Assembly (NCBI GenBank): GCA_054661495.1
Contig: BAAFSQ010000238.1
Span: 1 to 15,215 of the forward strand
DNA length: 15,215 nt
From: Zygophlyctis sp. KS116
Lineage: Eukaryota; Fungi; Chytridiomycota
Direction: 5' to 3'
The translations under genes and the position numbers were made by a program. The notes below the pieces were generated by a model. It worked only from the letters and a program-made list of their open reading frames with translations. It was not told where the DNA came from and searched no databases. This document shows, one piece after another, positions 6,574 through 8,176 of the stretch. Position 1 is the first letter of the stretch. Each line of letters opens with the position of its first letter.

Positions 6574-8176
<1,603 letters not shown>

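Follow-up and report, generated by a model that had tools for sequence, protein, structure and literature searches.

A 26-nucleotide GT...TG micro-intron in a chytrid PFK-2/FBPase-2 gene and a small class of probable TG acceptors

The window (the whole 15,215-nucleotide stretch of Zygophlyctis sp. KS116 DNA analysed here) carries on its minus strand a PFK-2/FBPase-2 gene with the following features, in which L027 and L028 denote two of the relatives discussed below.

8064-8176 (-), exon 1, from the ATG at 8176 through the P-loop GLPARGKT to ...WLGSRV-AG, ending in phase 2 within an Arg codon
8038-8063 (-), intron 1, 26 nt, GT...TG
8058-8063 (-), 5' splice site of intron 1, AG|GTATGT, U2-type, at the 82nd percentile of this genome's donor scores
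8043-8048 (-), putative branch region TTAAAT, with the A at 8045 or 8044 (CTAAT in L028)
8038-8045 (-), 3' end AATCTTTG of intron 1, which L027 and L028 share letter for letter; the TG acceptor is at 8039-8038
8014-8015 (-), first downstream AG, which would make a 50-nt intron and remove IFNVGQYR; missing in L028
7431-8037 (-), exon 2, remainder of the kinase domain
7403-7430 (-), intron 2, 28 nt, GT-AG, absent from an RNA contig of run X20
6574-7402 (-), exons 3-6 with the RHGES bisphosphatase domain and the stop at 6574
7281-7259 (23 nt), 7089-7058 (32 nt) and 6938-6912 (27 nt) (-), canonical introns

With intron 1 cut at the TG, the model encodes 488 residues and its four other introns are canonical and 23-32 nt long. 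Pfam 6PF2K is matched by both halves of the gene on either side of intron 1 (exon 1 matching positions 11-43 of the family) and His_Phos_1 by the 3' exons, and for the kinase exon there are matches to solved structures of PFK-2/FBPase-2; the product is identified as a PFK-2/FBPase-2 by its 6PF2K kinase domain, the histidine phosphatase domain after it and the catalytic motifs. The P-loop, FNVGxYRR, DATN and RHGES are intact, as in fungal bifunctional enzymes of the FBP26 type (6PF2K plus His_Phos_1), from which the otherwise ordinary window protein differs by a kinase-domain insertion of ~45 residues. This Ser/Pro-rich insertion (7890-7750, -) is present in all six relatives and is possibly a phosphorylation segment. 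A 183-nt contig from RNA run X20, with one mismatch to the window, covers intron 2 and not intron 1; the 28 nt of intron 2 are spliced out of it, which is evidence of both transcription and splicing of the gene. A conserved two-intron gene of ~204 residues (8207-8874, +) faces the PFK-2 gene head to head; it is one whose predicted ATG is 30 nt from the PFK-2 ATG and whose last exon has no Pfam match; contigs of runs X3 and X4 break or have loose ends at 8246-8528, where the depth of X3 is raised.

An earlier note on this DNA had proposed that the gene requires an intron running from GT to TG, and the letters are as it described. At 8063-8038 (-) a 26-nt stretch starts with GTATGT, contains an in-frame stop (TAA at 8047-8045 in the exon-1 frame; retention gives a stop after 44 codons) and ends in TTTG, and IFNVGQYRR resumes in a different frame at 8036 (-). 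Excision of the 26 nt mends the frame, the joined AG|A encoding Arg and IFNVGQYRR being restored. The donor that the note called strong fits the U1/U6-type consensus of the genome. No AG is present from 8063 to 8015 (-); the first one does lie within the YRR region (8015-8014), where the note had placed it, but its use would delete eight residues (IFNVGQYR) and not six. For the putative branch A the note had proposed a distance of 7 nt from the 3' end; the motif TTAAAT is weak, and in an alignment to L028 (CTAATCTTTG) the branch A could be 8044, at 6 nt, instead of 8045, at 7 nt, both distances falling in the 6-8 nt range of canonical introns with CTRAY. Where a U2-type intron has a terminal AG, this one reads TG in the window, in three further sequencing runs and in two relatives.

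The earlier note had asked for a miscall at the TG to be excluded, and the reading of TTTG as an erroneous TTAG, although the assembly is fragmented and of metagenome type (12.7 Mb in 1175 contigs), is refuted and has practically no probability left. Contigs from three runs of three studies (X3, spanning 6400-8275; X4, 7061-8210; X6, 7988-8138) are identical to the window over 8038-8063, and TG is also found in two related species. These contigs are not copies of the source assembly, since each of the three departs from the window at 8001, and the X4 contig has six further differences (seven in total).

Six relatives, with 68-97% identity, were retrieved with exon 2; each exon of a spliced model served as a separate query, and the joins were used for alignment, for the tree and for reading the junction. 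In this comparison of the orthologous intron, which the earlier note had called for, all six have an intron at the identical phase-2 position. Four end in AG (L029, 22 nt; L033, 25 nt; L037, 25 nt; L038, 24 nt) and two in TG (L027, 27 nt, ...TAAATCTTTG; L028, 24 nt, ...CTAATCTTTG). Although 47% of four-fold sites differ between L028 and the window, the final eight intron bases are identical, and positions -8 to -3 of intron 1 match in 6/6 cases, compared with 12/48 across eight canonical orthologous introns (~2e-4, a post hoc value). Relative to L028, exon 1 shows 19 synonymous codon changes and one non-synonymous, and the eight codons past the junction show four and one; on these counts both stretches are judged to be under purifying selection. 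The +24 AG is absent from L028, in which the next AG is at +34 and out of frame, corresponding to a 58-nt intron with a frameshift. Ten homologues lack extra sequence between the P-loop and FNxG and have a spacing of 27 residues, which is the mode (43-54 in the other 12); the TG cut also gives 27 residues and is the only one that restores the motif spacing of the homologues. The TG stands exactly at the AG position of four relatives. Given purifying selection on both exons and an alternative AG that is not conserved, the productive mRNA very probably uses the TG at 8039-8038, in support of the note's reading.

The same data bear on the notion of a dead or dying gene, in which the acceptor was destroyed by a change from AG to TG and the kinase half is no longer produced. 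TTTG is one base from TTAG and a second PFK-2 gene, a paralogue, is present on contig C116, but this reading is barely credible and is largely refuted by the selection on exon 1, seen against an L028 gene that is itself TG, and by the coding SNPs of the X4 haplotype, all eight of which are synonymous; moreover, the reading frame is otherwise intact and intron 2 is spliced in RNA.

The tree of the orthologues is L037,((window,L027),(L028,(L038,(L029,L033)))), and grouping the TG sequences as one clade is rejected with DNA (p-AU 0.023) and not with protein (0.06). PFK intron 4 (7058-7089, -), which the window shares with L027 and L037, is missing from L028, L029, L033 and L038, and its common loss agrees with this tree, according to which TG either arose once and then reverted to AG or arose twice with identical context. 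No intron is present at the intron-1 site in the distant homologues L044-L046 or in the C116 paralogue; the distant relative represented by L045 and L046 (45% identity) keeps the PFK-2/acyltransferase gene order. Elsewhere in the window, an intron of the amino-acid transporter gene (12167-12194, +) is absent in L033.

A self-trained gene model applied to 200 kb of unselected contigs yielded 442 predicted introns, 438 of which are 22-34 nt long (the others being two of 37, one of 35 and one of 82 nt), so that the size of intron 1 is typical of the genome and not only, as the earlier note had remarked, of its neighbours. Donors begin with GTA in 94% of these introns, a pyrimidine tract is absent and, where introns have a CTRAY motif, its A lies 6-8 nt from the end in 41/57 motif matches. 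Canonical introns skip a TG ending at nucleotide 24 or later 32 times in 442, which indicates that AG wins where it is available. No clear TG intron was found among the 442 unselected introns, and the GT-TG class must therefore be rare (below ~0.7% if the true count is 0/442); one ambiguous in-frame case in a long gene (G000 C6:3503-3526, -; L015), AT-rich and stop-free, can be read as a 24-nt GT...TG or a 27-nt GT...AT intron. Over 215 kb, a blind version of the gene model favoured TG no more than other non-AG ends, so a general loss of AG specificity is not indicated, and genome-wide counts of GT-TG patterns were at background and uninformative (5 versus 7 and 62 versus 108 in reversed controls). 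The 82-nt intron (G000 C4:17788-17869, -; L012) is the sole long one among the 442 and may host a small RNA. Homologues of fungal type and the presence of DUF4455/4456 genes fit a zoosporic fungus.

When an AG is forced on the gene model, intron 1 becomes 50 nt long and IFNVGQYR is lost; this GT-AG intron was rejected as a size outlier that costs conserved protein and relies on an AG that is not conserved. With the last two bases unscored, PFK intron 1 is among the top five non-AG-demanding loci of the 215 kb, the 32-nt GA end scoring 6.8 and the 26-nt TG end 6.5, a near-tie that leaves the choice of TG at this intron to homology. Other ways of dispensing with a TG acceptor, namely U-to-A correction of the RNA, the minor spliceosome or another non-AG cut (32-nt GT...GA or 29-nt GT...AT), are together very improbable. 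To our knowledge, no U-to-A editing has been described. Further non-AG ends do score similarly in the blind model, but these cuts change the conserved protein length and miss the orthologous AG position. Both alternative donors, the upstream GTAAG (8068; GC in L028) and the downstream GTAC (8059), were rejected, since they would need a GA end and alter the protein length, as was read-through of the TGA at 8039-8037, which would require a 17-nt intron ending in TT. The signals of U12-type introns are a 5' site of RTATCCTT and a branch of TCCTTAAC; the donors here are GTATGT or GTATTT and such a branch is absent. U12 snRNA gave no match in a genome search that detected no positive control in this incomplete assembly, so that its absence is not proven. 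Editing of GT-AA to GT-AG has been mentioned (PMC7072748).

The TG end is not peculiar to one gene, as the earlier note had implied, and appears to belong to a small genome-wide and clade-wide class. Four further loci, preselected as TG candidates and hence informative on recurrence and not on frequency, have introns as follows, with the margin of TG over the AG-only parse.

ureG, 25 nt, ...TACTAATGTTTTG; the TG join restores AVTNDIF; margin 14.0
galE, 24 nt, ...TACTAACCTCTG; the TG join restores DNLSKGF; margin 9.9
U2AF1, 27 nt, ...CTAAATATTTG; the TG join restores AGNVYVRF; margin 11.3
YCG1, 26 nt, ...TTAAATCATTG; the TG join restores ILDLFIIHG; margin 23.2

At all four, TG is the best-scoring end in the blind model. 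Together with PFK-2 they share a pyrimidine at -3 and the absence of AG across the 22-34 nt window; in YCG1 no AG is present for 52 nt downstream. The ureG intron ends in TTG in all five sampled lineages, each with CTAAT and four with mutually distinct interiors, and these include lineages with AG at PFK intron 1. CTAAY occurs in two of the five TG loci of this genome, against a background of 11%, five loci being too few for an enrichment call. Possible further members at the level of pattern, with a strong donor, TAATC and a CTTG or TTTG end, are found at G000 C378:3511-3536, C194:12318-12344, C437:5041-5066 and C49:37409-37435 (all +). A candidate GT-TG intron in the window at 12468-12521 (+), with a weak GTTTCA donor and 23 nt long, would add a hydrophobic N-terminus, and alignment to L033 gave no confirmation. 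HUS1 was looked for in this genome and not located.

TG acceptors as such are known. In human genes, U2-dependent TG 3' splice sites have been described in 36 introns, for example GNAS intron 3; they were always alternatives no more than 28 nt from a used AG, AG orthologues were not found, and it was concluded that they are unable to function constitutively (PMC2374985). The sites described here resemble them in being U2-type GT...TG introns with a pyrimidine at -3, a purine at +1 and conserved flanks. A tandem of the human type, with the +24 AG recognised by U2AF1 or serving as the main acceptor and the TG as a step-II alternative, would agree with the AGs at +24 (PFK-2 in the window), +26 (ureG) and +13 (galE and U2AF1), which are inside the human limit of 28 nt. 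However, chance alone places a further AG within 23 nt of 72% of canonical acceptors in this genome, the first AG is at +34 in L028 and at +52 in YCG1, the AG product would lack IFNVGQYR or be frameshifted and a 50-nt intron is far beyond the size range. Such a tandem is improbable at intron 1, although the +24 AG of the window may give the TG some help. In contrast to the human and Drosophila tandems, the TG of intron 1 is replaced by AG in four relatives. Unlike the human sites, the TG here is the sole frame-restoring site, TG and AG are interchanged between orthologues, and two cases (L028 PFK-2 and YCG1) have no AG within 28 nt. In Drosophila, 23 GT-TG introns are annotated, 22 of them with a similar alternative splice (PMC4528330), and TG can be the most-used acceptor (bifid intron 6), as it would be here (PMC4528330); nearly all of these have a neighbouring alternative splice, and Drosophila is not a micro-intron system. 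Among fungi, the accessible parts of the sources report 22 GT-TG of ~92,000 junctions in Ganoderma lingzhi (PMC11590231) and novel GT-TG junctions in long reads of S. pombe (10.1101/045922); in those parts GT-TG appears at low frequency, among many single-mismatch types at similar counts, and conservation or obligate use is not evidenced, unlike here. A literature search for obligate TG acceptors in chytrids found no publication that describes them. As judged from the sequences, the present case would differ from known TG acceptors in its obligate use, its AG-free examples, its interchange with AG and its recurrence across the clade.

The splicing machinery of this organism appears ordinary in most respects. 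The snRNAs are canonical (U2 with GTAGTA, U6 with ACAGAGA, U5 with loop 1 GCCTTTTAC), the Prp8 alpha-finger segment is nearly identical to that of human, and Slu7, Fyv6/FAM192A, Prp18 and U2AF1 are all present in the genome; loss of Prp18, Slu7 or Fyv6, or an altered alpha-finger, was accordingly rejected as a cause. U5 occurs in tandem diverged copies, three at one locus (L063; G000 C456:220-712) and two at another (C51:52195-52520). The conserved loop of Prp18 reads WPIG-ISGTS-IHERSA here (L039:1504-1866, -; G000 C40) and in a relative of 87% identity (P0258), while the next-closest homologue (P0259) has VKGVS and the usual loop is V-T-x-V-G. Among 154 Prp18 homologues the consensus V, T, V and G are present in 137, 141, 139 and 137, respectively, and outside the clade one sequence only departs at all four positions.

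In yeast, the Prp18 loop, which guards the fidelity of 3' site choice, sits by the bases at -3 and -4, and when it is deleted, 3' sites with other bases at -2 and -1 are used more (PMC10711555). Deletion of prp18 or mutation of its loop in S. cerevisiae activates BG sites (UUG, AUG, ACG, UGG), UUG and AUG being among the best-used non-AG sites without Prp18, and Prp18 and Slu7 are dispensable at a short branch-to-3' distance (PMC10711555). The sites described here are like the yeast BG sites in retaining the terminal G, in their freedom at -2, in the favourable short branch-to-3' distance and, possibly, in a tie to the Prp18 loop, which is divergent in this clade. The yeast sites, however, are errors of mutants in competition with YAG, whereas here a wild organism that has Prp18 and Slu7 would need the TG sites to make housekeeping proteins. 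The altered loop as the enabling change is a lead only, being a correlation within one clade.

These observations are best accommodated by a genuine U2-type micro-intron of 26 nt that has UUG as its productive 3' splice site; that RNA is cut at the TG, how efficiently, and by what step-II mechanism are inferences. As introns in this clade are 22-34 nt long, free of a pyrimidine tract and with the branch A ~6-8 nt from the 3' terminus, intron 1 is probably defined by its 5' site and branch site. Branching would then need no AG, and in step II the 3' end would be picked by distance and terminal G, with use of whichever docking site comes first at 6-8 nt beyond the branch. In spliceosome structures, the terminal G of the intron pairs with the intron G+1 and A(-2) contacts the branch A. 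Loss of the latter contact might be tolerated where the context is good and a competing AG is absent; AG would remain strongly preferred, and a YUG at the right distance would be ligated if the reachable window is free of AG. A rare class of introns (PFK-2, ureG, galE, YCG1 and U2AF1) may live on this tolerance of YUG, with a constrained 3' context. A bolder version, in which the clade spliceosome is naturally relaxed at -2, at least partly through the ISGTS loop of Prp18 together with the 6-8 nt branch spacing, and splices obligate, efficient and AG-independent YUG introns in housekeeping genes, of a kind that by the human data could not function constitutively, is conceivable but doubtful.

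A different purpose could be served if the TG were a regulatory bottleneck, a weak acceptor at which most transcripts retain intron 1 (and probably undergo NMD), so that turnover of fructose-2,6-bisphosphate is tuned by splicing. This proposal is compatible with the mechanism above and differs from it on efficiency and purpose. Intron 1 is the first intron and, if retained, introduces a premature stop, its 3' end is conserved to an unusual degree (the 6/6 matches against a 25% baseline, ~2e-4 and post hoc), TG is kept in ureG across five lineages and the same idea has been put forward for human TG sites (PMC2374985). Against these points, four relatives, a nested clade included, have AG at intron 1, the five TG genes have no common pathway, and the conserved context is equally explained by the needs of a working TG; we therefore regard the bottleneck as rather unlikely. 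The interchange of TG and AG at intron 1 during evolution likewise suggests that TG is a tolerated state and not a fixed regulatory need, in keeping with the preferred reading of a productive, tolerated UUG.

No signal of U2 introns is more invariant than the 3' AG, and TG sites were held to require a nearby AG in the study that serves as their reference. The additions made here are the confirmation by independent runs, the interchange of TG and AG on the tree, ureG in five lineages, the bound on frequency and the lead on the Prp18 loop. Housekeeping genes that appear to depend on TG, together with swaps between TG and AG, offer a natural test of the role of the A at -2, be it U2AF1 binding at step I or docking at step II, and of the Prp18 fidelity model. 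Gene callers restricted to GT-AG break or shorten such genes; the gene model used here deleted eight conserved residues of PFK-2 and split YCG1 in two. A trap in the hunt for TG introns is illustrated by positions 10045-10071 (+) of the window, which resemble a 27-nt GT-AG intron and end in GG or TG in relatives; the stretch is conserved codon by codon (KSAPFCRID) and is coding.
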